A stretch of 64,000 nucleotides of DNA from Dicyema japonicum. Its lineage: Eukaryota > Animalia > Dicyemida. The translations under genes and the position numbers were made by a program. The stretch covers positions 2,133,875 to 2,197,874 of the forward strand of contig RDEW01000004.1 of the NCBI GenBank assembly GCA_011109175.1, given 5' to 3'. Positions within the stretch are counted from its first letter, which is position 1, and each line of letters opens with the position of its first letter. The notes beneath the pieces were generated by a model. It searched no databases. It was not told the origin of the DNA and saw nothing but the letters and a program-made list of their open reading frames with translations. Shown in pieces: positions 21,031 to 52,079 of the stretch.

Positions 21031-21034
21031 GTAA

Positions 21035-23540: not shown

Positions 23541-24006
23541 TGTAGAGATGCTCCAATGCCGAGTTGTAAGATCTTCTGTAATGTCCAAGGAGGACCTTCA
23601 CGAAGTTTCTTTGAGAAGAAGATAGCATGTTACTTAATGCGTCCCGAAAATCATCAGGAAAAATCATTTAGTGACGTTTTTCTGTTTAGTAGAAATTTTA
23701 ATTTAATAAAATTTATATTATCAATAATTAAAATGATGTAAATTATATTTTTTAATGTTGTGGATAATTTGACTAGTTTAAAGCAAACTTTGTTCAGATA
23801 TAAAACTTCATTTTTTCAAAAATTTAAAGTTCAATCATTAATACGGGACGATTGCAATTAAAAATTTAAATGTTCTGTGTCAGGTTAATTATTAATTCTA
23901 AACATGGGAATTTAACTATTGTTAACATCTTTGATGGGATGGAATCAGCCAGAAGAGCTAGGATTCTCGTCGACATACTGGCGATTTTATCCTGCAGTTT
24001 AAGAAC

Positions 24007-24912
24007 TTGGAAGACCTTGAAGATTTCAAAAAGTCAATGAATGATAGTAATCCTTTTGGATTGGGTGGACATGAGATGGAGGAAGTAAAACTGCCTCCTT
24101 CGACTATAATTCTAAAAAATGTTCCGACATGGATAGAGATGGATGAATTAAAGGATTTTCTTCGGTCAAAGTTGACAGGAGAGTTCCGAGCTGAAAGATT
24201 TGTACGCCGTGGTGTTAGCTTGCCTATTGTTAAGCTTGTCTTAACAAGCAGGGGAGAAGCAGAATCCATTGTCAGATTGGGATTGATTATTGGATTTTTG
24301 AAGATGAAAGCGGAATGGTATATAAAACGAGAAATTCAGTGTTTTCGTTGTCAACAGTTTGGACATATTGCTCGGTTTTGCAAGAACTTAGAAAAGTGTC
24401 TACATTGTTCGGGATCACATAGAAGATCTGAATGTAAAGCATCGCATGATACAAAAAATTGTGTTAATTGTGGGTCGACTACTCATCTGGCAAATTATGG
24501 AGGTTGTCCGAAAGCTATGGAAGCCAATCGTGAGAAAATGAAGAAAGTTGCTGAAAAGTCAAAAGTCTCCAAAAAAGAAGATAAGAAACTTGCCAAATCC
24601 GGAAATAGTCATACTATAGCAAAAAATGCTAAGTCAGCTTTTCTTGATGGTCGAACTTGTTGGAATATTCCAACGGTCAAAAGGGCAACAGTAGAAGCTT
24701 CTACTCAGACAGAAGAACCTGTGAAGGGAAAGAAAGAAGAAATCTCAACACAGGTCAATGATGGTGAATGTCAACTTGATTATTCACAAACTTTGAAAAA
24801 ATTAGAGAAAAGCATTATAGAAGTAACGAAAACAAAAAAGGATACGAAGCATTTATTGGATTTGGTGGCGATCCTAAGAGGAGGGATCAGCCACCAAAAA
24901 AATCAGAAGTAA
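24007..24912 (+). CDS. Family B ORF1, gag-like with three CCHC zinc knuckles (true start upstream, frameshifted or truncated)
   Basis: CFRCQQFGHIARFC, CLHCSGSHRRSEC, CVNCGSTTHLANYGGC. Confidence 0.9.
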   Translation: MEDLEDFKKSMNDSNPFGLGGHEMEEVKLPPSTIILKNVPTWIEMDELKDFLRSKLTGEFRAERFVRRGVSLPIVKLVLTSRGEAESIVRLGLIIGFLKMKAEWYIKREIQCFRCQQFGHIARFCKNLEKCLHCSGSHRRSECKASHDTKNCVNCGSTTHLANYGGCPKAMEANREKMKKVAEKSKVSKKEDKKLAKSGNSHTIAKNAKSAFLDGRTCWNIPTVKRATVEASTQTEEPVKGKKEEISTQVNDGECQLDYSQTLKKLEKSIIEVTKTKKDTKHLLDLVAILRGGISHQKNQK

Positions 24913-27475
24913 TCAGGATAACCCTGATTAATGCCCGCTCTCTTCGGAAGCGGGCTTCAGAGCTGACTGCATTGGTCAGCACAGTGCATATGGATGTTTT
25001 GATAGTAAATGAGACGAAGATCAAGAAGGGAAGTTCTTTTAAACTTAATGGATTTTCATCAATTGATATTCCGTGGAAGAAGGGTTCTATTTCTGGAACT
25101 GGAACTTCGATTTATTATAAATCTAATTTGAATACGAAGAGACCAAGAATTATTGAAGAAGATGTATGTGAACTAGTCAGTGTGCAAATACAAACAAATA
25201 TTGGATGGATAACAGTTGGAGGAATTTATTCTAAGAGCTTACGTGAGTACCCTTGGATCATTGAGAAATTTTTTAACGAAAACGTGAATTCGATTTTGGT
25301 TGGGGACATGAACGCAAAGCATGTTGATTATGGATGTGTTACAACAAATCAGGATGGAAAATGTCTTATAAAGTGGATGGAATCAGGAGAATTGAAAATT
25401 TTGACGTCAGCAGAAATAAATCACTATGCAACTTATAGTGGTGATAAACTTGGATTGTTCATAATGCCTCTGACGATGAGTGAAATGTGTGATCCTCCAT
25501 ATATCGAAAATGACATAGGAAGTGACCACATCCCACAAACGATTGAATTAAAAACTGGTCCGGTTTACACACGACAGTTATTCATTGGATATGATGTCAG
25601 CAAAATTGATTGGAATCACTTCAATTTCTACATCAGGCTGAAAATTGGTAATGTTTGTGATTTGGGGATTTCGAAACCGGAAGATATCGACATTCTGGAT
25701 AACAAAATAAGATCTTTGTTGTTAAGTTATCTGGAAAATTATGGAAAAAGAAAAAATCTGTTGCCGCAGGAAAATATGATAATAGGAGTAGAAGAACGCT
25801 CTTTGCGTCAGGAGAAGAATAAGTTAGAAAATAAATTAAAGAGGTGTTGGGATATCTTCGACTCTCAAGAACTTAAAATGCAGATCAAGTTAGTGAAGAA
25901 GAAAATAATGGATGTTGTAAAGAAGAATGAAGAAAAAGTATGGAAAAGAGAATGTTCAAAGTTACGTCGACAGAACCCAAAATTTTGGAAACTATATGCA
26001 AGAATGAATTCTCCCAGTAATAAGAATGAAGAAATATCTCTCAAGTCAGATGATGGTCTCACTATTCCAAAAGAAGAAATTCCAAATGTTTTACGTCGAC
26101 AATTGTCCAAAATTCAAGAGATAGATCCGGCATCTTTTATTCCGATAGAAGTACAAGATACAAGAAGTAGTTATAAAGAAAAGTCGAAATTGAGTGGTCC
26201 CTTGTGTCATCCTATAACGCTGGAAGAAATAAATGCTGCAATTAAGGGTTGCAAAAATAAAGCACCAGGGTGGGATTTTATCCCAATGAGTATTTTCAAG
26301 AACGCAGGCCCAATTTTGATTGAGTGCCTAAAAATATTATATAATTCTTCTTGGAGTTTTGGTCATGTTCCAGCTTATTGGAAACGAACAATTGTACGCA
26401 TGGTTGTGAAAAAAGGAAAGCCAAGGTCAAAAGCAGATAGTTATAGGCCAATTAGCCTAGTCTGCTCAATATCGAAAGTTATGGAAAAAATTGTTTTCAA
26501 TCGTCTATCAAGGCATGTTGAGGATAATAATTTTCTCTCTGATAATCAACTGGGATTTCGGCATAAAAAAGGGACTGGAGATTGCTTTAAAGAGCTAAGA
26601 TCTGCAATCGAAATTTCACGAAATAAAAAGGAATTTCTTACAATAGCATGTTTGGATATAACAAAAGCGTTTGACAGTGTTTGGCACTTTGGACTTGTTG
26701 ATACGTTGTCAAAAGCAGAAATTGGGAAAACTGCGTTATTATGGATAGAAAACTTTCTTTCAAAAAGAAAGTCATATATACGTGTTGGAAATTTAATTTC
26801 AAAGAAAATTGAATTGCGAAGAGGAGTTCCACAGGGTTCAATTCTCAGCCCGCTACTCTTCAATTGCGTAATGAGAGATTTGCCAAAACAGAGAGCGTAA
26901 ATAGTCAAATGATTATTTATGCTGATGACATTCTTGTGCTTGATTCAAGCATGAATAAACAAATTTCATGGAAAAGGGTGGAATCCCATATTACTAAGAT
27001 TGGAAAGTGGTGCCAAAACAATGGGTTGACTCTATCGAGGGAAAAAACAACAGTCACTTGGATTGCAAGTAAAAGAAAAAATATTAATCAATGTGTGAAT
27101 ACTGGGGATATAAAAATCTCTGAAACATTGAAGTATCTCGGATTGTTGATAGACCGAAGAGGATCTTTCAAGGAACATATTAAAACACGAAGAAAGAAAG
27201 CTACAGGAATGTTGAAATCTTTAATTCGATTTCATTTGGAGCCTGAAACTTTTCTTTTTGTGTATTCGGCGTGTGTTGAACCATTCTTGATATATGGTTA
27301 TCAAGGATGGTTTAGAACAAAAGAAAGTGATGTCTTTGTCAAAAAATTGGAAAAGTCCAGAAGATTTGCGATTAAATTGGCATATGGACTGGACTTAAAA
27401 TCTAATATCGAAGAGGATTACGACCTGAAAGTCAGAAAGATAGAAAAATTATTACATCACTTATGGAAAATGTGA
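24900..27475 (+). CDS. Family B ORF2, APE endonuclease plus reverse transcriptase
   Basis: LINARSL, NETK, GDMNAKH, SDHIP; YRPISL, QLGFR, LDITKAFD, GVPQGSILSPLLF, YADD. One frameshift near 26885, where this copy has 4 A and the copies at 28427 and 38310 have 5 A. Confidence 0.92.
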
Positions 27476-27636
27476 TGTAATTTTTGGGGTCCAAACGAAG
27501 TAGAGACATGTGGTGTCTCATAAAATGACCCTACACGATGAATACAAACCCACTTAATTAGTTTTGGTTCAGGTTTTGGTTTCTTTACAGTAATTAGTTT
27601 TGGGGTTTGTTAGAAAATAAAATTTGTCTTGTCTAT

Positions 27637-27648
27637 GGACGAAAAAGT
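27637..27648 (+). repeat. Recurrent 12-mer GGACGAAAAAGT, putative target-site duplication
   Basis: Exact copies at 27637, 28306, 29179, 33104, 38190 and 39063, and a partial GGACGA at 23846. Each lies at an element boundary. Confidence 0.9.
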
Positions 27649-27649
27649 A

Positions 27650-28305
27650 TTGAAGCTAACATTGCGAAGAAAAACAAAATTGACCAAAAAAAGGAAAGAA
27701 TCGAATGGAAAATTATTTCTAAAACGAGAAAATGCCCATAATGGAGAAAGTGAAGTTTCCAAAACTGGAACGAATAAGAAATTAAAGTCAGAGTTTAGAA
27801 TGTATGGGCAGACTGGCTGGAATACGACATATAATAAGAAACCTTCTAAAAAAGAAACAGTAGAAGCTTCAACACAGAGAATAGAGTGGTGCTCTTAAGA
27901 AGAGAGGGCAGCCACCGAAAAAACCAGAAGTAGTCAGGATAACCCTGATTAATGCCCGTTCTCTTCGGAAACGGGCCTCAGTGCTGGTTGCTATAGCCAG
28001 CACGATCCAGATGGAAGTTCTAATTATAAACGCAACTAAATTGAAGCACATGGATTGGATTTAGCATCTGAAATTGATGACGAATACGAAAGAAAAACAA
28101 GAAGAATCGGTGATTTATTACATTGCTTGTGGAAACTCGCATTGTAATTGGGGCTTTTTACGGAGAAGAGACATACGGTGTCTCATGAGAGTGCCCCGAT
28201 ATAGAAGACCCCAAATCTTGGCTTTCCTCTTTAGTTAATGGCTCTTACCTTGTTTAGTTAGTTGGGGTTTTGCGAATAAATCATGTTATCTGTTATCTGT
28301 TATCT
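27650..28305 (+). mobile_element. Internally deleted family B' derivative (ORF1 tail, ORF1/ORF2 junction, ORF2 end, 3' UTR)
   Basis: The APE start is fused near 28040 to AHGLDL...LLHCLWKL, which is homologous to the B ORF2 end. (TGTTATC)n tail; flanked by the 12-mer on both sides. Confidence 0.85.
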
Positions 28306-28317
28306 GGACGAAAAAGT

Positions 28318-29178
28318 ATATACGTGTTGGAAATTTAATTTCAAAGAAAATTGAATTGCGAAGAGGAGTTCCACAGGGTTCAATTCTCAGTCCGCTACTC
28401 TTCAATTGCGTAATGAGAGATTTGCCAAAAACAGAGAGCGTAAATAGTCAAATGATTATTTATGCTGATGACATTCTTGTGCTTGATTCAAGCATCAATA
28501 AACAAATTTCATGGAAAAGGGTGGAATCCCATATTACTAAGATTGGAAAGTGGTGCCAAAACAATGGGTTTACTCTATCGAGGGAAAAAACAACAGTCAC
28601 TTGGATTGCAAGTAAAAGAAAAAATATTAATCAATGTGTGAATACTGGGGATATAAAAATCTCTGAAACATTGAAGTATCTCGGATTGTTGATAGACCGA
28701 AGAGGATCTTTCAAGGAACATATTAAAACACGAAGAAAGAAAGCTACAGGAATGTTGAAATCTTTAATTCGATTTCATTTGGAGCCAGAAACTTTTCTTT
28801 TTGTGTATTCGGCGTGTGTTGAACCATTTTTGATATATGGTTATCAAGGATGGTTTAGAACAAAAGAAAGTGATGTCTTTGTCAAAAAATTGGAAAAGTC
28901 CAGAAGATTTGCGATTAAATTGGCATATGGACTGGACTTAAAATCTAATATCGAAGAGGATTACGACCTGAAAGTCAGAAAGATAGAAAAATTATTACAT
29001 CACTTATGGAAAATGTGATGTAATTTTTGGGGTCCAAACGAAGTAGAGACATGTGGTGTCTCATAAAATGACCCTACACGATGAATACAAACCCACTTTA
29101 TTAGTTTTGGTTCAGGTTTTGGTTTCTTTACAGTAATTAGTTTTGGGGTTTGTTAGAAAATAAAATTTGTCTTGTCTT
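28318..29178 (+). mobile_element. 5'-truncated family B copy
   Basis: Nearly identical to 26776-27636 (PQG, YADD, C-terminus, tail); bounded by 12-mers. Confidence 0.92.
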
Positions 29179-29190
29179 GGACGAAAAAGT

Positions 29191-32100
29191 AATAAGGAAT
29201 TTTTCCGAATTTTGGTTGCCATGGTTGTTTCAAGAAAGGCGAAAGTTTCAACGAAAAATGGAAACTCCTCTCGTCCCCCGGGGGCTACTACTGCTCAGTC
29301 ATTTGCTCTGGAAAACAAGACGCCGCAAAAGGCAGAACCTCCTAAACCTGCCAATGAACCAACGAAGTACGACTCTTCAGTTATGAATAAAGCATCAAAC
29401 GAACCAAATCCCACAGAAAACTTGTCCGTGCTGATAACAGTGAATTCCGCCACCAGTGCAATAAGGATTGCGAACACACTATACCTCTATGACCAACACG
29501 GATGCATGAGGATGAGCCACAGAGGACCGGGCTCCTTCCGTCTGGACTTCCGAGACAACTCACACATGGCCACCTACATGGAGGCCATAAATGAGACCTG
29601 TCCCTTTGGTCTGGACAACCACCACTTTAGGGCAATCTCAGCTAAACCATCTGAGATTGTCCTGAGGAACCTTCCGTTCTGGGTGAGGGAGGACGACCTC
29701 TTGGACTACCTACAGGAAATGGCTCCCTCAACTACGAAAGTGACCCGAATGTCCAAAGGATCGCGGCCCATGCCAATGGCGATGGCCACGATTAAGAGTA
29801 GACCAGAAGCCACATCGTTAATACGTTGTGGTTTCTATATTGGAGTGAACAAAATATCCTGCGAGTGGAAGAGAAGAGGACCGCCGATCTGTTATAAATG
29901 TCAGCATATAGGCCACTTCTCATACCAGTGCACAGGAAAACAAAGATGTCTACGTTGCGCGGGAGAACACGATATCTCCAAATGTATTATAATATTGGAT
30001 TCTGAACGGAAATGTATCAATTGTGGGTCTGCCAAACACGGTGCGAGGTATGAAGGATGCCCTGTGCTTGTGGAGGCCAGGCGAAAGCTCATTCCTCAAA
30101 TCCAAAAAGCAGATGTGAAACCTACGAACGACATAGACAACGACAAGGTTGAGACGCTACCACGAAAAAGAACTGTTGGTCCAAGTGTTAACAAGCCGTC
30201 TGCAGATAATCTACCAAAGAAACGGCATGGCAAACCAGAGGAAAATACCAGGAAGAATCAAAGAAGAACTACATGAAATTATTACAAGATTGAGAGAACT
30301 TAGTGTTACTTTGGGAGTGGATTTACGGGAAATGGTGGACCTGGCCATGGAGAGCCCGGGCCACCAAAAAGAAATCTGAAAAGAATCCTAAAGTTAGTGC
30401 TGGTGAATGCTCGCTCCTTGGTGAAAAGGCATGATGAACTAGCACTACTTATGAGGACTGCCAAGGCAGATGTCTTGGTAGTCAACGAGACGAAGATTCG
30501 AGAAGGAAGGCATTATATTCTGGAAGGATATGACTCAGTGGACATTCCATGGAAAGATGGAGCAGTTGCTGGAACAGGAACCTCAATCTTCTTTCATAAA
30601 CTATTGCAAACTCGAAACGACTGCATTATATCGGCCGACGATTCGGAATTCGTGTCTGTCGACGTGCAATGTGGTGGAACGTGGATAACCGTGGGAGGGC
30701 TATATTCTAAGGACTTGGCCCGGTCCTCTGTGAAAATTGTCGAGTTCTTCGAAAGAAACCCAATGTCGATCCTTGTGGGAGATTTGAACGCCAAGAACAG
30801 GACCTATGGATGCTATGGAAACAACAGGGACGGTCAACTACTAGCAGATTTGGTCGGGGAAATTGGAGTCGAAGTCTTAACGACCGAAGAACCTAACCAC
30901 TTCTCATACTACGGGGGTGATATGCTGGGATTGGCCTTAGTATCTCCACAACTACTAGACCATGTAAACAGGCCAAGGTTACTCTGGGATATAGGGAGTG
31001 ACCATATCCCTATGGAGATGACATAAATCTTGAACCGGATATTATTGAAGACATTTTTCTGTATTATGATACCTCGTCGGTAGACTGGGAACATTATCGT
31101 CATTATTTATCGAAGAGTATATTGATGAAGATTAATTATTCCTTTTCTACAGATAATGAGTTGGATTCTTTCAACCAAGATCTATCCAATACTATTACGA
31201 TGTATCTGCGATTATATGCAAAGAAGATTTACTCAAAAATCCTTCCGAAAACGAATCAGTCCTGCCCTCCCTCTATTCGGGGTCTAATTCGCGAGAGGAA
31301 TACTCTGAAGACGAAACACAGACGATGTGTGGACATGTGGGACAGGATAACTTTGAAAAACAATATCGATGCTATCCAAAAAGTTATACAAAGAGCCTGG
31401 AAGTTGTATTCCGAAAACCAAGTTAGGAAAGCAGCCTCGAAAGTGCACCGGAAGAATCCTTGCTTCTGGAAATTGTACTCCAGACTGACCAACAAAAATT
31501 TGAGAGCAAAGAACATTGTACTGGCGGATCAAGATGGAAGAACAATTCCCCTGGACAGAGTACCGTCAGTATTCAGGAAACAATTAGAAAACATACAGGG
31601 AGTAGACCCAGTCAGTATTATATCTGAAAAATTCTCAGAAGATATATCTAGCTCTATGGATTACTCCATAGACGATCTGAATAGTATGGAAGAGGAAATC
31701 ACATTGGCAGAAGTCAAGACTGCTATACGGGAGTGCAAAAACAAGGCTCCTGGTTTTGATAGCATTCCGATGACTATGTTTAAAGAAGGATCCGATGAAT
31801 TTCTGTCTGTTCTACAAAAGATGTATAACGCAAGTTTCAAGCTCGGACATTCCCCTTCACTATGGAAGCACTCAATTGTAAAGATGATCCCTAAACCTGG
31901 AAAGTCGAGGAAAGATCCTCTTAGTTATAGGCCTATAAGCCTTATCTGTTCTACATCGAAGATTATGGAACGGATTATTTTCAAGAAATTGAATCAGTAC
32001 ATAGAAAAGATTAATTTTCTACAGTGTTACCAATGGGGTTTTCGGCCAGGGAGATCGTGTGGTAATTGCATTTACTCTCTAAACTATGAGATTGCAAATG

Positions 32101-33103
32101 CTTTTGAGAAGAGGAGCCAGTTGAGCCTTGTCTGCCTTGACATATCTAAGGCTTTCGACAGCGTATGGCACGAGGCCCTATTCTGTCAACTGGTTCGATC
32201 AAAAATATCAAGACAAATGTTCCTATGGCTGAAGAACCTGTTGACTGGGAGAATATCAAACGTGGTGGTTGGTGGAAGATACTCCGAAGATATATTGTTT
32301 AAAAGGGGAGTGCCGCAGGGGTCTATTCTAAGCCCTCTATTATTCAACGTATTTATGGAAGATTTTCCTTCTCCACAAAACGTTAGGACCAAGCTGATGA
32401 TTTATGCGGATGACATCTTAATCCTAGACTCATCTCTGAAGGCCTACATCTCTGAGCGACGAATCGGGGCTTTTGTCGACAGAGTTCGGACATGGTGCGA
32501 TAGGAGAGGGATGAAACTATCCACAGAAAAATCCAGTTACTTGCGAATATGCAGGCTGGGTCGACACCAGAGAGAGATGTATACGCTACGGATACCGAGA
32601 GTCTCTAGCCTGAAATACCTGGGATTGCAGTGGATGGAAGAGGATCGTACCGGAAGGACATCGAGGAGCGGAGAAAGAAGCCGTTCAAGCGATGTTCTGC
32701 TCCAGAAAACTTATGCTGGACGCCGATACAATGCTCTATATCTTCCAAACTGTGATTCTCCCAAGACTGATATATGGATGCGAGGGATGGTATTTATACT
32801 CTCTCGAGAGAAAGGATTCTCGCTCGCCTGGAGAAAACAAGGCGCGAGCGGCGATAAAAAATATCTCTGGGGAGGAAATTACATGAAAGCCTCTCCGAGG
32901 AAGAGAATAGCCTTGTCAGGCCGGTAAAAATAGATATCGAAGTAAGGTTGGGCAACCAGCTTCTCAATACGTACTAAATGGACGACTACAATGGAGATGG
33001 GATACGTGTGAAGTGTCCAGGCCGCAAAGGCGGACACGATTAAATCCCTTTAATTGACTCCTTACTTACTTTGGAATAAATTTGATTTGATTTGATTTGA
33101 TTT
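29191..33103 (+). mobile_element. Non-LTR retrotransposon family C, apparently full length, copy 1
   Basis: Short 5' UTR, ORF1 from ATG 29221 to about 30379 (CYKCQHIGHFSYQC, CLRCAGEHDISKC, CINCGSAKH), ORF2 about 30358-32977 (LVNARSL, GDLNAK, SDHIP, LDISKAFD, PQGSIL, YADD) with frameshifts. 3' hairpin and (ATTTG)n tail; 12-mer on both sides. Confidence 0.93.
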
Positions 33104-33115
33104 GGACGAAAAAGT

Positions 33116-34100
33116 GGTGCCACTGGTGAAAAAAGTGGTGCCACTTGTGCTACAAGACTAAGAAATATACTACGAGTGGAGAAGCATACTTCAGGCCTAA
33201 TGGAGATGTGTTGAAAGATGTTTTGTTTGTTCAGATTCACATAGAAGATCGCAGTGTCCAGTTAAAAACAATAATAAGTTTTTGAATTTGTTGGTTCATC
33301 CATCGACTTTGCCAATTATGGAAGATGTCCCAAGGCTGTTGAAGCTAACATAGCGAAAAAAAAAACAAAATTGACCAAAAAGGAAAGAATCGAATGGAAA
33401 ATTATCTCTAAAACGAGAAAATGCCCATAATGGAGAAAGTGAAGTTTCCAAATTTGGAACGAATAAGAAATTAAAACTGGCTGGAATAGGACATATAATA
33501 AGAAACATTCTAAAAAAGAAACAGTAGAAGCTTCAATACAGAGAAGAGAGGGCAGCCACCGAAAAAAAAAAAAAACCAGAAGTAGTCAGGATAACCCTGA
33601 TTAATGCCCGTTCTCTTTGGAAACGGGCCTCAGTGCTGGTTGCTATAGCCAGCACGATCCAGATGGAAGTTTCTAATTATAAACGAAACTAAATTATGGA
33701 AGATGCCCCAAGGCTGTTGAAGCTAACATGCGAAGAAAAACAAAATTGACCAAAAAGGAAAGAATCGAATGGAAAATTATTTCTAAAACGAGAAAATGCC
33801 CATAATGGAGAAAGGTGAAGTTTCCAAAACTGGAACGAATAAGAAATTAAAGTCAGAGTTTAGAAAAAGGAAAGAATCGAATGGAAAATTATTTCTAAAA
33901 CGAGAAAATGCATATAATGGAGAAAGTGAAGTTTCCAAAACTGGAACGAATAAGAAATTAAAGTCAGAGTTTAGAATGTATGGGCAGACTGGCTGGAATA
34001 CGACATATAATAAGAAACCTTCTAAAAAAGAAACAGTAGAAGCTTCAACACCAGAGAATAGAGTGGTGCTCTTAAGAAGAGAGGGCAGCCACCGAAAAAA
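33116..34100 (+). repeat. Tandem B'-derived units (short array)
   Basis: Same ORF1-tail/junction units as 42976-48404. Confidence 0.8.
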
Positions 34101-34451
34101 TTTTCCTCAACCAAGGCATAATTAGGGAGACTTACCGAAAACCTTGTCAATTCAAACATAAGATATAACACCCTGTATAAACTTTCCGGATTATAAATGA
34201 GAGAAAAGGTGATTCAAACTGTTAATACCATAAGCGAGAAAAGCCCACAATTAAAAGTAAATGAATATTAATATAATTATAAAACATCACCCATAAATGA
34301 TCAAGTGACAATGTAGTATAGTTACCAACACAATCCGTAAAAGTATTAATATCAATCTTTATTTGAAAGTCTCATCTTATCCTCATCACTCAATGACCCA
34401 TTCACTATATAATCACATAATAATCAACCTTGTAATACACTACCCCTCAGT
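34096..34451 (-). pseudogene. Duplicated COG2 3' end (last intron, last exon, 3' flank)
   Basis: Nearly identical to about 14006-14362, with single-base indels in A runs. Confidence 0.85.
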
Positions 34452-37400
34452 CGAGTGGTTCCGATTACTTATACAAATGATCTTCGAATAAAATATATAA
34501 CAAGAGAATTTGAATACATTTATATTTTTTAATAATTTATTATTTAATGTTAGAAATAAACGTTCAGGAAATGATATTGAATGTTTAAGGCTAAAAAGTC
34601 ACGATAGGATATCCAAGGAACGTTTCCGAAGCTTAGATTTACCTGCATTGACAAACCCGTCACTTTTGGTGTCATCCAAAATAACAATATGAAGTTGCGA
34701 AATCAAAGAAGCCACATAATATTGCAGAGAATCTTATTAATCCGTGTCCATTGGAAATAGTGAAATAGTCCTGGGTCCAACGTCTGTCGAAAACTGCACC
34801 AGATTTCTTTGTCAAATAATTGTATCCGGGACCGAATTAACTGTATCAGTGATGATATTCTTAAACAAGTTGTTTCGGACATTAAGAATTCTCGCATCAA
34901 GATTTCAATCCTGTTGGATGAATCATCGATGTTGATAATTGCAGTTAACTAATTGGCTATGTTCGTTATGTACAATAAAATTGAGACTTTTTTTAATGAA
35001 CATGATATTCCATAGGAAATTATTGGGTCAATTTGCTTGGAGGGTGCTCCAGTTATGCTGGGAAACAGGTCTTGGGTTTGCAGCCCATTTGAGAAAACAT
35101 GTTCAAGATGTAACAGTTACTCCTACATCATTTATTGGCATTCGCTCATATCGAAGTCTTTGTCGATTAATTTAAAAGATGTCTTTAATTTGTCTGTCAA
35201 AATCGTGAATTTCATTTGAAGAAGGGCTTTGAATCATTGATTGTTCAAAGCATTATGTATTGATGCAGACGCCACTGTTCTTTTGCATCATACCGATGTC
35301 AGATGATTGTCAAAGGTCGTGTTTTGACAAGATTTTTTATTCTCAGACTTGAAATCAATCAATGTTGTACGACTCAAATTCTTTGGATATTTTTTTGGTG
35401 GGTTCGCAAGTAAGGTTTCCTGTGGTTTTCCATTGTTCCCACTGTAGCATGAAAGAGCTTTGCAGAAGAATCCGATTGGAGAAGGGAACTTTTTAACCAA
35501 TCAGTTTTTTTTCTTTGGAAGTGGACAGCCGAAGTGGGTTCCATCTTCCTTACAGACGCGAAGAAAACCGGATCCGCGACTACGGTCGTAGTTTCTGTGG
35601 GAGTACCAGTTGATCCAGTATGAAGGCACAATATATGAATAGTTCTTGAGTCTTTAGAGTGTAATTCCCGATAACGCGAATCTCCACGCAGAGGCATACT
35701 TTAAGGCCGGTCTAAGAATAGTTCGTGGTTAGGTTACTTCTTCGGTTTATGGGCCCGCATATTAATATCCAGGTGTGTCGAGAATATCTTGAACTGACGC
35801 CCAGTAATGTTTCATAAGTAGGTTAAGGTGTATATGACAAATGTGTTTTGGAGAAGGCTTTCCAGTTTATCTTCCAACTACGATTAAATCCGTTTTAGTG
35901 TTTTCCAGAATTGACGTGATAAACTTTTCCCGTTGAGGCAATTGATCAAGTGTCGCCATCACTGATCCTGGTGTTCTCCTATACTCAGACTGACATTTTT
36001 GTTGAGTTATTATTTATTTATTGTGACCGGTTGAATACGAGCCCAGGTTAAAGGCGTTATACGTGGCTGATGATATATGCGGATGACATCTTAATCCTAG
36101 ATTCATCTCTGAAAGCCTACATCTCTGAGCGACGAATCGGGGCTTTTGTCGACAGAGTTCAGGTTTGGTGCGATAGGAGAGGGATGAAACTATCCACAGA
36201 AAAATCCAGTTACTTGCGAATATGCAGGCGTTAAAGCCGTTAGAAATCAATAATTTTTTTAATGAAAAATAAATCAATGAATTAATTCCTATCTTTATAA
36301 TGATTAGTAATTTTAATAATTTAAATTTCTCACAAATTTTCATTTTTTAACGGCTAACATCTGATAGAATAGTAATAGATTTTTGCTCACGCTTGTTTTT
36401 GTTTTTTGTTATGAAGGTTGTCTACTTTACTCTGCTGCAAAAGCAAGAAATAATAACCTATCTGAGATACCAAATTTAACCATCCAATTTGCTGAAGGAG
36501 AAACGAAATTTCATAAGAACTGCGTCATTATTCAGACTAAAAGACTCATTGCCGGCTCAACTATTTTTTTTCAAAACAAGTGGAATTTTATTGCACGTGT
36601 TCGCTGTGGAAGAAGATGAACAGAAGAGGATATTTATTGAAAATGTTCACCTCAAAAATGGACATCCTGGTCGTGATAGACTTCTTTCTCTTCTAAAGAA
36701 TCTAGTCTATGTATCTTGCAGAGATGAAGTTATGGTTGTTCTCAGGTCTTGTTCACAATGTCTGGCAAGACGGCTCATGAACACTCGACCAACTATAACA
36801 CCTATCAGAGCATATACAGTGAGAGAGAGGTACTAGTTAAATATTCTAATTTCAGGTATATTTTAGATTTGGTTGATATACGACACTATTCAAATTTTAA
36901 TGAAAATTTTTGATGGCTTTTGGTTGGGATGGATTCCTTTTCCAAATTTTGCTGGACAAGACCTCTAAAGAGTAAATCGGCTACGGTGGTGTCAAGTGCA
37001 ATAAAGAGCATAATTTTAATCAAAGAATTTGAATTTCAAATGGATAAACATAATTGAAGAAATTACAAGTTCCTATAATTCTTTACAGCATTCAACAACG
37101 TTGCACGCTCCTTTTAAATTTATGTTCGGAGCTTCTGCCAATGAAACCATAAATAATCATTACTCAGCAGAGGAAATGAATGAAATATTCAACCAAATTG
37201 ATTTATGGAATGAAGAAACACAAACTGAAGCAACTGAATATCTTGCATGGTTTTGGTCATCAAATGAAACTTTGAGAACAAAAGCAATTTTAAATTCAAA
37301 CATTGCTGAAAGAAAAATGATAACTAAAAGAAGGTGGAAGAATGATATTTCTATCTTTAACATCGGTGATCGCGTTGTTAGAAGGGTCTATCTTGATAAT

Positions 37401-38195
37401 AATAAAAAAACACGAAAAAGTGGCTTAAACGAACACATTGATACATTCATATATCATGTTAAAGGAATATCTGATACAGGAATAATTGATTTAGAAGGAG
37501 AAGATGGAAGTGTGATTCTAGAAAATAGCAGAGACTTAGCAAAGCTAGAATAATTTTACAATATAAATTTCTCAATTTTTTCTAATAAAAACAGTTATTA
37601 TTATTTTTGATCATTTATAATAGCATTAGAGTTAGGAGTTCTAAGGCTTTCAGCTTTGCATTAGAGTTAGGAAAATTTAGGGATATATATTAGAGTTATA
37701 CAACGAACAGAACGTAAGAAAACTAACAATTTGACGAGACACAGCTGAAACACACAATTTGAATTGAAATAGCAAAATCACCAATGTAACTAAGAGAAAA
37801 AGTATCCATTAAGTCAGGGATGTCGAACTCATTTCCCTTTGAGGACCCCATTGACAAGCTGATAGTCGGCTCGATATACTGGTTGTAGAAATGCTCAAAT
37901 ACCGAGTTGTAAGATCTTCTGTAATGTCCAAGGAGGACCTTCACGAAGTTTCTTTGAGAAGAATATAGCATGTTATTTGATGCGTCCCGAAAATCATCAG
38001 GAAAAATCATTTAGTGACGCTTTTCTGTTTAGCAGAAATTTTAATTTAATGAAATTTATATTATCAATAATTAAAATGATGGATATTATAATTTTTTAAT
38101 GTTGTGGATAATTTGACTAGTTTAAAGCAAACTTTGTTCAGATATATAACTTCATTTTTTTCAAAAATTTAAAGTTCAATCATTAATTCGGACGA
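34449..38195. repeat. Segmental duplicate of 20117-23851
   Basis: Colinear hAT, LINE, RT fragment, Ginger-like and hAT-end content; duplicated ORF pairs are visible in the ORF track. Confidence 0.95.
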
Positions 38196-38201
38196 AAAAG
38201 T

Positions 38202-39062
38202 ATATACGTGTTGGAAATTTAATTTCAAAGAAAATTGAATTGCGAAGAGGGGTTCCACAGGGTTCAATTCTCAGTCCGCTACTCTTCAATTGCGTAATGA
38301 GAGATTTGCCAAAAACAGAGAGCGTAAATAGTCAAATGATTATTTATGCTGATGACATTCTTGTGCTTGATTCAAGCATGAATAAACAAATTTCATAGAA
38401 AAGGGTGGAATCCTATATTACTAAGATTGGAAAGTGGTGCCAAAACAATGGGTTTACTCTATCGAGGGAAAAAAACAACAGTCACTTGGATTGCAAGTAA
38501 AAGAATAAATATTAATCAATGTGTGAATACTGGGGATATAAAAATCTCTGAAACATTGAAGTATCTCGGATTGTTGATAGACCGAAGAGGATCTTTCAAG
38601 GAACATATTAAAACACGAAGAAAGAAAGCTACAGGAATGTTGAAATCTTTAATTCGATTTCATTTGGAGCCAGAAACTTTTCTTTTTGTGTATTCGGCGT
38701 GTGTTGAACCATTCTTGATATATGGTTATCAAGGATGGTTTAGAACAAAAGAAAGTGATGTCTTTGTCAAAAAATTGGAAAAGTCCAGAAGATTTGCGAT
38801 TAAATTGGCATATGGACTGGACTTAAAATCTAATATCGAAGAGGATTACGACCTGAAAGTCAGAAAGATAGAAAAATTATTACATCACTTATGGAAAATG
38901 TGATGTAATTTTTGGGGTCCAAACGAAGTAGAGACATGTGGTGTCTCATAAAATGACCCTACACGATGAATACAAACCCACTTTATTAGTTTTGGTTCAG
39001 GTTTTGGTTTCTTTACAGTAATTAGTTTTGGGTTTGTTAGAAAATAAAATTTGTCTTGTCTT
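38202..39062 (+). mobile_element. 5'-truncated family B copy (duplicate of 28318-29178)
   Basis: Same truncation point and tail; TGG changed to TAG near 38396 plus a frameshift; bounded by 12-mers. Confidence 0.92.
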
Positions 39063-39074
39063 GGACGAAAAAGT

Positions 39075-42000
39075 AATAAGGAATTTTTCCGAATTTTGGT
39101 TGCCATGGTTGTTTCAAGAAAGGCGAAAGTTTCAACGAAAAATGGAAACTCCTCTCGTCCCCCGGGGGCTGCTACTGCTCAGTCATTTGCTCTGGAAAAC
39201 AAGACGCCGCAAAAGGCAGAACCTCCTAAACCTGCCAATGAACCAACGAAGTACGACTCTTCAGTTATGAATAAACCATCAAACGAACCAAATCCCACAG
39301 AAAACTTGTCCGTGCTGATAACAGTGAATTCCGCCACCAGTGCAATAAGGATTGCGAACACACTATACCTCTATGACCAACACGGATGCATGAGGATGAG
39401 CCACAGAGGACCGGGCTCCTTCCGTCTGGACTTCCGAGACAACTCACACATGGCCACCTACATGGAGGCCATAAATGAGACCTGTCCCTTTGGTCTGGAC
39501 AACCACCACTTTAGGGCAATCTCATCCAAACCATCTGAGATTGTCCTGAGGAACCTTCCGTTCTGGGTGAGGGAGGACGACCTCTTGGACTACCTACAGG
39601 AAATGGCTCCCTCAACTACGAAAGTGACCCGAATGTCCAAAGGATCGCGGCCCATGCCAATGGCGATGGCCACGATTAAGAATAGACCTGAAGCCACATC
39701 GTTAATACGTTGTGGTTTCTACATTGGAGTGAACAAAATATCCTGCGAGTGGAAGAGAAGAGGACCGCCGATCTGTTATAAATGTCAGCAGATAGGTCAC
39801 TTCTCATACCAGTGCACAGGAAAGCAAAGATGTCTACGTTGCGCGGGAGAACACGATATCTCCAAATGTACTATAAATATGGATTCTGAACGGAAATGTA
39901 TCAATTGTGGGTCTGCCAAACACGGTGCGAGGTATGAAGGATGCCCTGTGCTTGTGGAGGCCAGGCGAAAGCTCATTCCCAAATCCAAAAAGCAGATGTG
40001 AAACCTATGAACGACATAGACGACAAGGTTGAGACGCTACCACGAAAAAGAACTGTTGGTCCAAGTGTTAACAAGCCGTCTCAGCTAATCTACCAAAGAA
40101 ATCGGCATGGCAAACCAGAGGAAAATACCAGGAAGAATCAAAGAAGAACTATATGAAATTATTACAAGACTGAGAGAACTTAGTGTTACTTTGGGAGTGG
40201 ATTTACGGGAAATGGTGGACCTGGCCATGGAGAGCCCGGGCCACCAAAAAGAAATCTGAAAAGAATCCTAAAGTTAGTGCTGGTGAATGCCCGCTCCTTG
40301 GTGAAAAGGCATGATGAACTAGCACTACTTATGAGGACTGCCAAGGCAGATGTCTTGGTAGTCAACGAGACGAAGATTCGAGAAGGAAGGCATTATATTC
40401 TGGAAGGATATGACTCAGTGGACATTCCATGGAAAGATGGAGCAGTTGCTGGAACAGGAACCTCAATCTTCTTTCATAAACTATTGCAAACTCGAAACGA
40501 CTGCATTATATCGGCCGACGATTCGGAATTCGTGTCTGTCGACGTGCAATGTGGTGGAACGTGGATAACCGTGGGAGGGCTATATTCTAAGGACTTGGCC
40601 CGGTCCTCTGTGAAAATTGTCGAGTTCTTCGAAAGAAACCCAATGTCGATCCTGGTGGGAGATTTGAACGCCAAGAACAGGACCTATGGATGCTATGGAA
40701 ACAACAGGGACGGTCAACTACTAGCAGATTTGGTCGGGGAAATTGGAGTCGAAGTCTTAACGACCGAAGAACCTAACCACTTCTCATACTACGGGGGTGA
40801 TATGCTGGGATTGGCCTTAGTATCTCCACAATTACTAGACCATGTAAACAGGCCAAGGTTACTCTGGGATATAGGGAGTGACCATATCCCTATGGAGATG
40901 ACTATAAATCTTGAACCGGATATTATTGAAGACATTTTTCTGTATTATGATACCTCGTCGGTAGACTGGGAACATTATCGTCATTATTTATCGAAGAGTA
41001 TGTTAATGAAGATTAATTATTCCTTTTCTACACATAATGAGTTGGATTCTTTCAACCAAGATTTATCCAATACTATTACGATGTATCTGCGATTATATGC
41101 AAAGAAGATTTACTCAAAAATCCTTCCGAAAACGAATCAGTCCTGCCCTCCCTCTATTCGGGTCTTATTCGCGAGAGGAATACTCTGAAGACGAAACACA
41201 GACGATGTGTGGACATGTGGGACAGGATAACTTTGAAAAACAATATCGATGCTATCCAAAAAGTTATACAAAGAGCCTGGAAGTTGTATTCCGAAAACCA
41301 AGTTAGGAAAGCAGCCTCGAAAGTGCACCGGAAGAATCCTTGCTTCTGGAAATTGTACTCCAGACTGACCAACAAAAATTTGAGAGCAAAGAACATTGTA
41401 CTGGCGGATCAAGATGGAAGAACAATTCCCCTGGACAGAGTACCGTCAGTATTCAGGAAACAATTAGAAAACATACAGGGAGTAGACCCAGTCAGTATTA
41501 TATCTGAAAAATTCTCAGAAGATATATCTAGCTCTATGGATTACTCCATAGACGATCTGAATAGTATGGTAGAGGAAATCACATTGGCAGAAGTCAAGAC
41601 TGCTATACGGGAGTGCAAAAACAAGGCTCCTGGTTTTGATAGCATTCCGATGACTATGTTTAAAGAAGGATCCGATGAATTTCTATCTGTTCTACAAAAG
41701 ATGTATAACGCAAGTTTCAAGCTCGGACATTCCCCTTCACTATGGAAGCACTCAATTGTAAAGATGATCCCTAAACCTGGAAAGTCGAGGAAAGATCCTC
41801 TTAGTTATAGGCCTATAAGCCTTATCTGTTCTACATCGAAGATTATGGAACGGATTATTTTCAAGAAATTGAATCAATATATAGAAAAGATTAATTTTCT
41901 ACAGTGTTACCAATGGGGTTTTCGGCCAGGGAGATCGTGCGGAAATTGCATTCACTCTCTAAACTATGAGATTGCAAATGCTTTTGAGAAGAGGAGCCAG

Positions 42001-42975
42001 TTGAGCCTTGTCTGCCTTGACATCTCTAAGGCTTTCGACAGGGTATGGCACGAGGCCTTATTCTGTCAATTGGTTCGATCAAAAATTTCAAGAAAAATGT
42101 TCCTGTGGCTGAAGAACCTGTTGACTGGGAGGATATCAAACGTGGTGGTTGGTGGAAGATATTCCGAAGATATATTGTTTAAAAGGGAGTGCCGCAGGGG
42201 TCTATTCTAAGCCCTCTATTATTCAACATATTTATGGAAGATTTTCCTTCTCCACAAAACGTTAGGACCAAGCTGATGATTTATGCGGATGACATCTTAA
42301 TCCTAGACTCATCTCTGAAGGCCTACATCTCTGAGCGACGAATCGGGGCTTTTGTCGACAGAGTTCGGACATGGTGCGATAGGAGAGGGATGAAACTATC
42401 CACAGAAAAATCCAGTTACTTGCGAATATGCAGGCTGGGTCGACACCAGAGAGAGATGTATACGCTACGGATACCGAGAGTCTCTAGCCTGAAATACCTG
42501 GGGATTGCAGTGGATGGAAGAGGATCGTACCGGAAGGACATCGAGGAGCGGAGAAGAAGGCCGTTCAAGCGATGTTCTGCTCCAGAAAACTTATGCTGGA
42601 CGCCGATACAATGCTCTATATCTTCCAAACTGTGATTCTCCCAAGACTGATATATGGATGCGAGGGATGGTATTATACTCCCTCGAGAGAAAGGATTCTC
42701 GCTCGCCTGGAGAAAACAAGGCGAGCGGCGATAAAAATATCTCTGGGGAGGAAATTACATGAAAGCCTCTCCGAGGAAGAGAATAGCCTTGTCAGGCCGG
42801 TTAAAATAGATATCGAAGCAAGGTTGGGAAACCAGCTTCTCAATACGTACTAAATGGACGACTAAAATGGAGATGGGATACGTGTGAAGTGTCCAGGCCG
42901 CAAAGGCGGACACGTTAAAATCCCTTTAATTAACTCCTTACTTACTTTGGAATAAATTTGATTGATTTGATTTTT
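39075..42975 (+). mobile_element. Family C copy 2
   Basis: Colinear with 29191-33103. ORF1 starts at 39105 and ORF2 ends at 42853, with frameshifts at different positions from copy 1. Confidence 0.93.
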
Positions 42976-45900
42976 GAACAGTGGTGCCACTGGTGAAAAG
43001 TGGTGCCACTTGGTGCTAAAAGACGAAGAAATATACTTCGAGTGAGAAACATACTTCAGACCTAATGGAGATGTGTTGAAAGATGTTGTTTTGTTCTGAT
43101 TCACATAGAAGATCGCAGTGTCCAGTTAAACAATAATAAGTTTTTGAATTGTGGTTAATTCATCGAGTTTGCCAATTATGGAAGATGTCCCAAGGCTGTT
43201 GAAGCTAACATAGCGAAAAAAAAACAAAATTGACCAAAAAGGAAAGAATAGAATGGAAAATTATCTCTAAAACGAGAAAATGCCCATAATGGAGAAAGTG
43301 AAGTTTCCAAAATTGGAACGAATAAGAAATTAAAACTGGCTGGAATAGGACATATAATAAGAAACATTCTAAAAAAGAAACAGTAGAAGCTTCAATACAG
43401 AGAAGAGAGGGCAGCCACCGAAAAAAAAAACCAGAAGTAGTCAGGATAACCCTGATTAATGCCCGTTCTCTTTGGAAACGGGCCTCAGTGCTGGTTGCTA
43501 TAGCCAGCACGATCCAGATGGAAGTTCTAATTATAAACGAAACTAAATTATGGAAGATGCCCCAAGGCTGTTGAAGCTAACATTGCGAAGAAAAACAAAA
43601 TTGACCAAAAAAGTAAAGAATCGAATGGAAAATTATCTCTAAAACGAGAAAATGCCCATAATGGAAAAAGTGAAGTTTCCAAAATTGGAACGAATAAGAA
43701 ATTAAAGTCAGAGTTTAGAATGTATCGGCAGACTGGCTGGAATACGACATATAATAAGAAACCTTCTAAAAAAGAAACTGTAGAAGCTTCAACACAGACA
43801 AGCAGTCTTGATGAGAGTGACCAGGCGGAAGCACCTGTTAGAAAAGTGACTTTTGGAGTTGCTACACAGACTGTCGAGACTCACTCAAACATCTTGTCTG
43901 AAAATGAAGAAGTAGTAGCTTCCAACTCGATTCTTGACAAGTTGGAGAGAAGCATTAAAGATATGACTAGAACAAAAAAGGATTCTAAATTTTTACTAGA
44001 TTTGGTGGCGCTCTTAAGAAGAGAGGGCAGTCACCAAAAAAACCAGAAGTAGTCAGGATAACCCTGATTAATGCCCGTTCTCTTCGGAAACGGGCCTCAG
44101 TGCTGGTTGCTCTAGCCAGCACGATCCAGATGGATGTTCTAATTATAAAAGCAACTAAATTGAAGCACATGGATTGGATTTAGCACTGAAATTGATGACG
44201 AATACGAAAGAAAAACAAGAAGAATCGGTGATTTATTACATTGCTTGTGGAAACTCGCATTGTAATTGGGGCTTTTTACGGAGAAGAGAAATACGGTGTC
44301 TCATGAGAGTGCCCCGATATAGACGACCCCAAATCTTGGCTTTCCTCTTTAGTTAAAGGCTCTTACCTTGTTTAGTTAGTTGGGGTTTTGCGAATAAATC
44401 ATGTTATCTGTTATCTATCCGAGCGGCAACCGTGGTCCCACTAGTGAATAGGTGGAGCCACTGCTGCTACAAGACGAAGAAATATACTACGAGTTTGAGA
44501 AACATACTTTAGGCTTAATGGAGATGTGTCGAAAGATGCTTTTTGTTCTGATTCACATAGAAGAGCGCAGTGTCCGGTTACAAACAATAATAAGTCCTTT
44601 GAATTGTGGTTCATCCATCAAATTTGCCAATTATGGAAGATGTCCCAAGGCTGTTGAAGCTAACATAGCGAAAAAAAAACAAAATTGACCAAAAAGGAAA
44701 AATCGAATGAAAAATTATCTCTAAAACGAGAAAATGCCCATAATGGAGAAAGTGAAGTTTCCAAAATTGGAACGAATAAGAAATTAAAGTCAGAGTTTAG
44801 AATGTATGGGCAGACTGGCTGGAATACGACATATAATAAGAAACCTTCTAAAAAAGAAACAATAGAAGCTTCAACACAGAGAATAGAGTGGTGCTCTTAA
44901 GAAGAGAGGGCAGCCACCGAAAAAACCAGAAGTAGTCAGGATAACCCTGATTAATGCCCGTTCTCTTCGAAAACGGGCCTCAGTGCTGGTTGCTATATAG
45001 CCAGCACGATCCAGATGGAAGTTCTAATTATAAAGCAACTAAATTGAAGCACATGGATTGGATTTAGCACTGAAATTGATGACGAATACGAAAGAAAAAC
45101 AAGAAGAATCGGTGATTTATTACATTGCTTGTGGAAACTCGCATTGTAATTGGGGCTTTTTACGGAGAAGAGAAATACGGTGTCTCATGAGAGTGCCCCG
45201 ATATAGACGACCCCAAATCTTGGCTTTCCTCTTTAGTTAATGGCTCTTACCTTGTTTAGTTAGTTGGGGTTTTGCGAATAAATCATGTTATCTGTTATCT
45301 ATCGAGCGGCAACCGTGGTCCCACTAGTGAATAGGTGGAGCCACTGCTGCTACAAGACGAAGAAATATACTACGAGTTTGAGAAACATACTTTAGGCTTA
45401 ATGGAGATGTGTCGAAAGATGCTTTTTGTTCTGATTCACATAGAAGATCGCAGTGTCCGGTTACAAACAATAATAAGTCCTTTGAATTGTGGTTCATCCA
45501 TCAACTTTGCCAATTATGGAAGATGTCCCAAGGCTGTTGAAGCTAACATAGCGAAAAAAATACAAAATTGACCAAAAAGGAAAAATCGAATGAAAATTAT
45601 CTCTAAAACGAGAAAATGCCCATAATGGAGAAAGTGAAGTTTCCAAAATTGGAACGAATATGAAATTAAAACTGACTGGAATAGGACATATAGTAAGAAA
45701 CATTCTAAAAAAGAAACAGTAGAAGCTTCAATACAGAGAAGAGAGGGCAGCCACCGAAAAAAACCAGAAGTAGTCAGGATAACCCTGATTAATACCCGTT
45801 CTCTTTGGAAACGGGCCTCAGTGCTGGTTGATATAGCCAGCACGATCCAGATGGAAGTTCTAATTATAAACGAAACTAAATTATGGAAGATGTCCCAAGG

Positions 45901-52075: not shown

Positions 52076-52079
52076 AGGG

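Follow-up and report, generated by a model that had tools for sequence, protein, structure and literature searches.

A head-to-tail array of related LINEs with a recurring 12-bp target-site duplication at its junctions

Sequence-specific APE-type LINEs are few, and most of those described belong to the R1 and Tx1 clades; their natural ability to insert at a defined site gives them practical interest. R1 elements of D. melanogaster form head-to-tail tandems that are separated by an identical rDNA target-site duplication (TSD) and include 5'-truncated members, and the R1Bm endonuclease (EN) places its cuts in the two strands at a distance of 14 bp. For jockey dimers, the described origin is double insertion. 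Tandem copies of Tx1-Mar and SINEU-3 sandwich a 16-bp TSD inside Mariner-N4_AMi and arise by sequential insertion (Kojima 2015, PMC4494074). Downstream of Utopia in Phytophthora, U2 resumes from nt 39, and the 3' U2 flank of Keno is identical to that of Utopia (PMC4640811).

Here we analyzed a 64-kb window, i.e., the whole stretch of DNA under study, in which a 12-mer, GGACGAAAAAGT (T1), recurs between LINE copies. The window search yielded six exact copies of T1 (27637, 28306, 29179, 33104, 38190 and 39063), all on the + strand, with a chance expectation, by our own arithmetic, of ~ 0.008 exact matches in 2 x 64 kb; nine further matches have 2 mismatches each, a number at chance level. These six copies in one orientation, together with a partial copy (GGACGA) at 23846 and an altered form near 42976, had been reported in a preliminary description, and all of them were found again. 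The features of the array are as follows.

20116-23845, no strand: upstream flank, copy 1, ending ...CATTAATACG, ~ 97% identical to 34450-38189
23846-23851, + strand: partial T1, GGACGA, at the 5' junction of full-length B
23852-27636, + strand: element B, full-length autonomous LINE, tail TTGTCTTGTCTAT
about 24037-24912, + strand: B ORF1 (RRM-like region and three CCHC knuckles)
24888-27475, + strand: B ORF2 (APE and RT), one frame break near 26890
27637-27648, + strand: T1 (TSD), boundary of B tail and B'tr
27649-28305, + strand: B'tr, 5'-truncated copy of non-autonomous B', tail (TGTTATC)3T
28306-28317, + strand: T1, boundary of B' tail and Btr
28318-29178, + strand: Btr, 5'-truncated B consisting of the final 861 bp, tail TTGTCTTGTCTT
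29179-29190, + strand: T1, boundary of Btr tail and C
29191-33103, + strand: element C, autonomous sister LINE with broken reading frames, tail (ATTTG)5
29167-30276, 30397-31026 and 31122-32927, + strand: C ORF1 (CCHC), APE and RT, respectively
33104-33115, + strand: T1, original copy, the 5'-terminal 12 nt (head) of B''
33116-34092, + strand: B'' copy 1, B'-type non-autonomous, 5'-complete, cut by the duplication joint
34093-34100, no strand: tandem-duplication joint, 8-bp microhomology CGAAAAAA
34093-38189, no strand: flank, copy 2, ending ...ATCATTAATTC, matching 14002-14362 plus 20116-23845 without a 5.75-kb insertion
38190-38201, + strand: T1 directly after the flank ending ...ATCATTAATTC, the 'empty site' state for B and B'tr
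38202-39062, + strand: Btr copy 2, truncated at the same point as the 28318 copy
39063-39074, + strand: T1, duplicate of the 29179 copy
39075-42974, + strand: C copy 2
42975-42982, + strand: altered T1, TGAACAGT, in a stretch where the duplicates differ unusually much
42983-44416, + strand: B'' copy 2, complete, tail (TGTTATC)2T
44417-48406, + strand: three tandem B' units (44417-45300, 45301-46916, 46917-48406)

When the junctions were re-checked, T1 was found to follow three kinds of tail, TTGTCTTGTCT(A)T in B, (TGTTATC)3T in B' and (ATTTG)5 in C, and to precede variously truncated 5' ends, in agreement with the preliminary description. The truncation points differ, B starting at the equivalent of 26775 and B' at the equivalent of 44654, both downstream of T1. 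Btr is 99.3% identical to 26776-27636; B'tr is 98.8-99% identical to 46270-46916 and has one additional A at its 5' join. The flank before 38190, taken earlier for non-LINE sequence, shows no LINE similarity over its last ~ 1.9 kb; a 164-bp internal fragment of C, however, lies ~ 2 kb upstream (21729-21892 in the copy 1 flank). The hexamer at 23846-23851 may be a partial T1 or, equally, B's own 5' hexamer joined by microhomology.

Self-BLAST revealed a tandem segmental duplication (about 14002-34092 against 34093-43720+), in which 28306-33865 pairs with 38190-43720 and 20116-23851 with 34450-38195. The copies at 38190, 39063 and 42975 are duplicates of those at 28306, 29179 and 33104. Because 38190 and 39063 are such duplicates, the independent events are four insertions rather than six junctions; these four insertions left copy 1 with five copies of T1. 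The order in copy 1 is flank-GGACGA·B-T1-B'tr-T1-Btr, whereas that in copy 2 is flank-T1-Btr. Copy 2 therefore serves as an empty site within the same window, with B and B'tr absent there and T1 present at each new junction of copy 1, so that at least two separate rounds of insertion have taken place at the T1 site.

T1 is a regenerated 12-bp target-site duplication and is not element-encoded. It does not come from the donor, because B'tr has T1 on both sides while its ~ 99% matching array units carry a different oligomer (the tail repeats number 3 in B'tr and 2 in the matching units). Nor is it B's own 5' end, since Btr has the full T1 whereas full-length B opens with GGACGA followed by TTGCAA. 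The empty-site comparison, together with the T1 copies on both sides of B'tr, upholds the earlier proposal that the array was built by successive same-orientation insertions that regenerate the target. T1 is the head of the resident B'-type element B'', and not a host gene or an independent genomic sequence; its AAAAAGT part is a piece of an internal 21-bp repeat of B'' (33109-33150), a diverged form of which also occurs in the B' units. No relevant known RNA gene was found as the T1 target by Rfam at the gathering threshold over the whole window, by Rfam in E-value mode over both head regions, or by tRNA scans. A spliced-leader or 5'-leader origin of T1 was rejected, as T1 also stands before internally truncated bodies.

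B and C share 40-46% identity in ORF2 and 33% in ORF1, and they formed an isolated clade with 100% SH-aLRT in a tree of 129 RTs that held no clade-labelled LINE references. B' is a non-autonomous deletion derivative of a B-like LINE. The three LINE families of the preliminary description are thus replaced by one lineage, in which B and C are sister autonomous LINEs and B' is the B-like derivative. Each of the tandem B' units opens with (T)ATC + GAGCGG(C)AACCGT + GGTCCCAC, straight after the preceding tail; the units contain 367-bp internal repeats, and the final one is cut in its 3' UTR at 48406. Folding of the 3' UTR gave z-scores that were not significant.

Pfam detected Exo_endo_phos_2 and RVT_1 in both B and C, with the APE scoring above the PF14529 cut-off and below that of PF03372, and the APE catalytic motifs NETK, GD(M/L)NAK and SDH align between them. 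B and C encode an APE-like endonuclease with intact catalytic residues together with an RT, as do target-specific APE-type LINEs. The predicted model of the B APE (pLDDT 91) has TRAS1 and L1 endonucleases as its best fold matches, and the top TM-score superposition is on the R1-clade TRAS1 EN (TMt 0.83). Assignment to a clade by fold search was rejected, as TRAS1 EN was not separated from L1 EN, and so was assignment from solved structures, as sequence searches match only L1/R2 RT cores and no APE. ORF2 is ~ 860 aa long in both elements; the ~ 100-110 residues that follow the RT contain no Cys-His knuckle, and Pfam detected no RNase H. Three CCHC knuckles are seen in the alignment of B and C ORF1, and the full-length database relatives are APE-RT proteins of 870-930 aa. 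The frame break of B ORF2 near 26890 coincides with an A4 run where other copies have A5.

Protein searches returned a single close relative of B, in Octopus sinensis (P0286; LINE protein 79% identical, 85% nucleotide identity), and the contigs of the next-best relatives (L002, L003) hold distant elements that are uninformative. A CysRS exon had no match above 58% identity, its matches coming from vertebrates and flatworms. The O. sinensis element adjoins nt 1-3 of a U2 snRNA gene, the U2 match covering model positions 1-192 straight after the tail, and neither T1 nor a visible TSD is present at this U2 junction. U2 snRNA is absent from the 64-kb window according to Rfam, and the conserved B 3' UTR motif had no match in two metagenome scans. 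Derivation of the B' head (ATCG...CGGC...) from U2 was rejected, the similarity being too weak over about 16 nt. The position of the O. sinensis copy on the first U2 nucleotides hints at insertion at the start sites of transcription units.

We consider it probable, with some reserve, that the array arose by repeated target-primed insertion of an APE-type LINE lineage, i.e., B, C and B', at the 5' head of a sibling element. All three, the autonomous sisters B and C as well as the non-autonomous B', would enter one site by target-primed reverse transcription, with a bottom-strand nick presumably just left of GGACG and a top-strand nick 12 nt further, after AAAAAGT. Because the nicks would lie 12 nt apart, T1 would flank every insertion, and an intact T1 upstream would await the next arrival; because the site is the 5' terminus of B'', newcomers would stack head-to-tail upstream, with the oldest at the right. 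The order may have been C, then Btr, then the duplication, then B'tr and B, with the older steps reconstructed, and it agrees with each insertion having used the T1 nearest to the flank. Newcomers of full length with a similar head could join by microhomology, which would cover the junction of B, with GGACGA alone, and the B'-B' junctions, which are seamless. We infer that T1 is re-used owing to the sequence specificity of the endonuclease. It speaks against this reading that the neighbours of T1 changed on one or both sides after the first insertion, so that recognition would need to fit within ~ 12 nt, possibly with the upstream flank.

The preliminary description also held that B, B' and C share a fixed cleavage site. 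In keeping with this, all four insertions have the same 12-bp TSD, although at a single locus and its duplicate only, but a fixed 12-mer target of the families is not supported elsewhere: the B'-B' junctions carry a different 13-mer, GAGCGG(C)AACCGT, weakly similar to T1, and the O. sinensis relative is without T1. It is possible, although unlikely, that the site is a hot spot without strict specificity, in which a short preferred motif is combined with a TSD that re-creates a good site and with RNPs from array copies that re-insert nearby, as a local accident of double insertion. Non-specific jockey likewise makes TSD-separated dimers with differing 5' truncations, B' units that share ~ 99% identity with B'tr and are its likely donors stand in the same array at a distance of 18 kb, and the flanks of the relatives are different, both in O. 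sinensis and at other places in the window, where distant relatives at 3129-4925 and 12499-13034 occupy unrelated sites. However, four insertions with both nicks identically placed would hardly come about unless targeting were strong, two autonomous families and one non-autonomous family all used these two nick positions, and two sites in the same flank that differ from T1 at 2 positions (23069 and 37410) hold no inserted element.

Repeated insertion at T1 may be part of something broader, in that the lineage would carry a landing pad in its own 5' head and follow a wider rule, with the exact 5' ends of transcription units as insertion sites instead of a single sequence; we regard this extension as doubtful. 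If true, each 5'-complete copy, wherever it inserts, would install a further target that B, C and B' can use, and arrays would self-seed and grow upstream without a multicopy host gene.

There is little probability that T1 is encoded by the elements, as a shared 5' head or 3' read-through, and that the concatemer formed in one or a few events by template jumping, in which the RT reaches one RNA's 5' end and continues on the 3' end of another. T1 is indeed the head of B'', B opens with the same GGACGA, and the O. sinensis copy lies against the exact 5' end of U2 RNA, as a join between a tail and an RNA 5' end would give. Against this, T1 stands before B and B' bodies truncated at internal positions, Btr has T1 instead of the B head, B'tr has T1 where its closest relatives have the GAGCGG... 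head or flank, and the absence of B and B'tr from copy 2 separates the events at the site. Dating of events by the divergence between duplicates was dropped, since the substitutions are too patchy. A partial assembly artefact, i.e., two haplotypes side by side or a mis-joined repeat, so that the second T1 set is not separate, is very improbable: the patchy divergence (0 to 24 substitutions per 250 bp), the two large presence/absence stretches (5.75 kb and 4.45 kb) and the numerous homopolymer-length differences are haplotype-like or would suit such an error, but the sequence runs without a gap through the joint at 34093, a clean microhomology of 8 bp, and even if the artefact were real the duplicate would become an allele, the filled/empty comparison would be stronger and the five T1 copies of copy 1 would be unaffected.

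With repeated target-primed insertion as the preferred reading, the locus resembles R1 in its APE endonuclease, with a presumed fixed spacing of the cuts in the two strands, in a TSD that regenerates the target and in head-to-tail tandems with identical TSDs, 5'-truncated members included. It differs from R1 in that the target is a sibling LINE 5' head and not rDNA, and the tails are 5-7-nt microsatellites. ORF2 of the R1 clade carries a Cys-His motif C-terminal to the RT, whereas B and C ORF2 are without such a C-terminal knuckle. The closest described behaviour is that of the Tx1 clade (Tx1L in Tx1D; Tx1-Mar/SINEU-3), where a LINE and a non-autonomous partner share a fixed TSD at one site in another transposon; the target of Tx1-Mar, however, is an unrelated DNA transposon, while the array studied here has its target in the 5' terminus of the lineage itself. 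The L1/Tx1-type ORF2 also differs from the layout of B and C: Tx1 members have a long L1-like ORF2 with a C-terminal zinc knuckle, whereas that of B and C, with its PF14529-type APE, ends ~ 110 aa past the RT and has no such knuckle. Like the Drosophila telomeric elements HeT-A, TART and TAHRE of the Jockey clade, the array stacks related LINE families in one orientation with variable 5' truncation, a three-CCHC ORF1 and an APE-RT ORF2; unlike them, it is internal, with other sequence on either side, and has a 12-bp TSD at its junctions, whereas those elements are added to chromosome ends and have neither a target site nor a TSD. B and C have the layout of the Jockey clade (three-CCHC ORF1; ORF2 of about 900 aa with APE and RT, without RNase H or a C-terminal knuckle), but end in (TTGTC)n, (TGTTATC)n and (ATTTG)n tails instead of the poly(A) of that clade. 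The O. sinensis relative of B recalls the U2-specific LINEs Keno (Tx1 clade) and Utopia in lying directly against a U2 snRNA gene, although it adjoins nt 1-3 and not nt 39. The locus is therefore not a new system as such, since R1 and Tx1-Mar/SINEU-3 are earlier examples of tandem copies with a TSD sandwiched between them; serial insertion with re-creation of the site is a behaviour of other site-specific LINEs, seen here at a single locus.

If repeated insertion into the sibling head is true, a lineage with a Jockey-like protein layout that re-uses a 12-bp site and is aimed at the head of its kin would represent a new type of target. It would account for polar LINE arrays that grow away from telomeres and rDNA, and it would offer a compact site for the study of endonuclease specificity. 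Even if the site is only a local hot spot, the array would still be a clean natural case of serial insertion in which the TSD restores the target, and it would contain its own empty-site control.

A motif search of the window for T1, the 12-mer GGACGAAAAAGT found at the LINE junctions, returned exact copies at 27637, 28306, 29179, 33104, 38190 and 39063, each time on the + strand, compared with about 0.008 matches expected by chance according to our own arithmetic. The remaining matches in the window carried two mismatches each, which is chance level. When the junctions were read, T1 was preceded by the tail of B (TTGTCTTGTCT(A)T), of B' ((TGTTATC)3T) or of C ((ATTTG)5), B and C being autonomous LINEs and B' a non-autonomous B-like element. 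It was followed by a 5'-truncated B' (B'tr), a 5'-truncated B (Btr), an apparently 5'-complete C, or GGTGCCAC... At position 23846 only GGACGA is present, and at 42975 TGAACAGT takes the place of T1 (T1*). The junction reading confirmed the preliminary description as to the T1 positions, the three kinds of tail, the truncated bodies, and the partial and altered copies.

Self-BLAST revealed a tandem segmental duplication inside the window, 14002-34092 (copy 1) versus 34093-43720+ (copy 2), joined at 34093 with an 8-bp microhomology, CGAAAAAA. The identities of its three segment pairs range between 97 and 98%:

14002-14362 and 34093-34452, duplicated segment
20116-23851 and 34450-38195, duplicated segment
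28306-33865 and 38190-43720, duplicated segment

The duplication accounts for T1 at 38190, 39063 and 42975, which correspond to 28306, 29179 and 33104 in copy 1. Two additional blocks occur in copy 1 only, namely an unrelated 5.75-kb insertion (14363-20115) and 23852-28305, which comprises the full-length B and the truncated B'. With B'' as a resident element of B' type, the array reads as follows:

Copy 1: flank - GGACGA·B - T1 - B'tr - T1 - Btr - T1 - C - T1·B''(cut)
Copy 2: flank - T1 - Btr - T1 - C - T1* - B'' - B' - B' - B'(cut at 48406)

The duplicates diverge very unevenly, by 0-24 substitutions per 250 bp; they could be old copies subject to gene conversion, or else two haplotypes placed next to each other. 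On either reading, copy 2 shows the state preceding the arrival of B and B'tr; an empty site for these two elements is therefore present within the window, as flank-T1-Btr. The stretch 33056-33305, compared with 42930-43180, differs by 11 substitutions and 18 indel nt per 250 bp, far above neighbouring stretches; it spans the C tail and T1 together with ~200 nt at the start of B'', and the altered T1 lies within it. The 5.75-kb insertion is bordered by GTC at both ends and carries a 228-aa ORF on the minus strand (19398-20084) that gave no Pfam match, as well as an inverted stretch 72.6% similar to 567-981. The otherwise non-LINE flank holds a 164-bp internal C fragment (21729-21892 and 36066-36229; RT region, 95.7% identical), with no 3' end attached.

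Four points in the sequence say that T1 is target rather than element. First, the empty state flank-T1-Btr and the filled state, with T1 at every new junction, differ exactly as target-site duplication (TSD) predicts. Second, a full T1 stands before Btr, whereas full-length B begins with GGACGA+TTGCAA, and thus T1 is not B's own 5' end. Third, B'tr is ~99% identical to array units bordered by another oligomer, yet has T1 on both sides; it has three tail repeats versus two in the matching array units. Fourth, T1 stands before bodies truncated at internal positions. All of these agree with the earlier proposal of a target regenerated at each insertion.

ORF1 of both B and C encodes an RRM-like region followed by three CCHC knuckles, and ORF2 encodes an APE endonuclease and a reverse transcriptase (RT), stopping about 110 residues past the RT; no RNase H or Cys-His knuckle was found in ORF2 of either element. 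The APE catalytic motifs aligned in both. When the B APE was modelled with AlphaFold (pLDDT 91), a fold search matched it to the LINE endonucleases TRAS1 EN (TMt 0.83) and L1 EN (0.74). The sole frame break in B ORF2, at 26880-26900, is an A4 run that reads A5 in both truncated copies. It may reflect a homopolymer error of the assembly, and B would then be intact and possibly active. In B, ORF2 has no separate ATG and its frame overlaps with the last part of ORF1; the overlap, within 24880-24930, includes a seven-A run, an arrangement that could indicate frameshifting or coupled translation. B and C share 40-46% identity in ORF2 and 33% in ORF1, and a tree with 127 database relatives groups the two on a long stem with 100% support. 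B' has no intact ORFs; it contains B-like ORF1/ORF2-junction sequence and a B-like 3' UTR. Part of the former is arranged as 367-bp internal repeats that stem from the ORF1-end/ORF2-start region, with three in tandem at 45512-46661, three at 47128-48281 and one in the unit at 44417. The three LINE families initially proposed are therefore two autonomous sisters and one non-autonomous relative. The protein layout of B and C resembles that of Jockey, but the tails of B, C and B' differ in being microsatellites.

Searches of protein collections that do not include the host genome returned a single close relative, from Octopus sinensis (79% aa identity). At VCDQ01001570.1:8390-12367 lies a B-like LINE, full-length but decayed and with 85% nt identity, whose (TTGTC)-type tail adjoins a complete, slightly mutated U2 snRNA from nt 1-3 (Rfam 118.9 bits, model 1-192), unlike the nt 39 site of Keno and Utopia (PMC4640811). 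Neither T1 nor a visible TSD was seen at this locus. This U2 adjacency, at a single locus, is unlikely to be chance. A 33-bp B fragment and a TGTTG repeat lie just upstream of this LINE's 5' end. Within the window, the B/C lineage has three older and more distant relatives, with 30-43% aa identity, which occupy unrelated sites rather than T1:

3129-4925, + strand, distant relative
11192-11465, + strand, distant relative
12499-13034, - strand, distant relative

A (TAACA)-type repeat resembling the tail of another element precedes 3129-4925. Immediately right of the array, an unrelated 5'-truncated LINE of higher GC (49790-52100, + strand) has a 489-aa ORF with RVT_1 and an upstream APE remnant. 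The ORF at 56347-56691 (- strand), weakly similar to an integrase core (rve), is probably an LTR-retrotransposon remnant. The only host-gene signal found in the window is an exon-like ORF (10604-11020, - strand) with a match to the cytoplasmic cysteinyl-tRNA synthetase catalytic domain.

We consider repeated sequence-directed insertion at T1 by the B/C lineage the probable explanation. Most likely, a sequence-directed B/C endonuclease would cut at both edges of T1 with a 12-bp stagger, similar to the 14 bp of R1Bm, and after target-primed reverse transcription the TSD would restore the site. The predicted nicks lie to the left of GGACG on the bottom strand and behind AAAAAGT on the top strand. 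B and B'tr separate the flank from Btr, so later arrivals would have entered at the flank-proximal T1; the downstream context was already altered by then, so T1, perhaps with the upstream flank, would suffice. The T1 at 33104 forms the 5' terminus of B'': AAAAAGT within it opens a 21-bp repeat (33109-33129, 33130-33150) also found, diverged, in B' units, the homology of B'' and B' extends to the junction, and the 12-mer of B'' corresponds to GAGCGG(C)AACCGT in B'. Similar G-rich hexamers stand at the start of B (GGACGA) and of the O. sinensis copy (GCGGAG). The target is therefore the head of a sibling element and not host sequence. The seamless B'-B' joins and the GGACGA-only junction of B would fit microhomology joining of full-length cDNA, its end matching the TSD overhang. 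The fixed target initially proposed holds in that T1 is reused at this array; the single U2-adjoining locus argues against one fixed 12-mer across the lineage. A hot spot for insertion without strict specificity is an unlikely account of this reuse. That the 12-mer is encoded by the element and spread by template jumping is highly improbable, for T1 does head B'' but also borders Btr and B'tr. An assembly artefact affecting the duplicate is the least probable reading.

The preliminary suggestion of a new system was too broad, as R1 and even jockey form tandems through serial insertion into a regenerated TSD, and so do Tx1-Mar LINEs and SINEU-3, which insert in a mariner transposon and have a TSD of 16 bp (PMC4494074). 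New here are the host group, a LINE lineage that stands isolated and has Jockey-like proteins, and the use of the lineage's own 5' head as the target.
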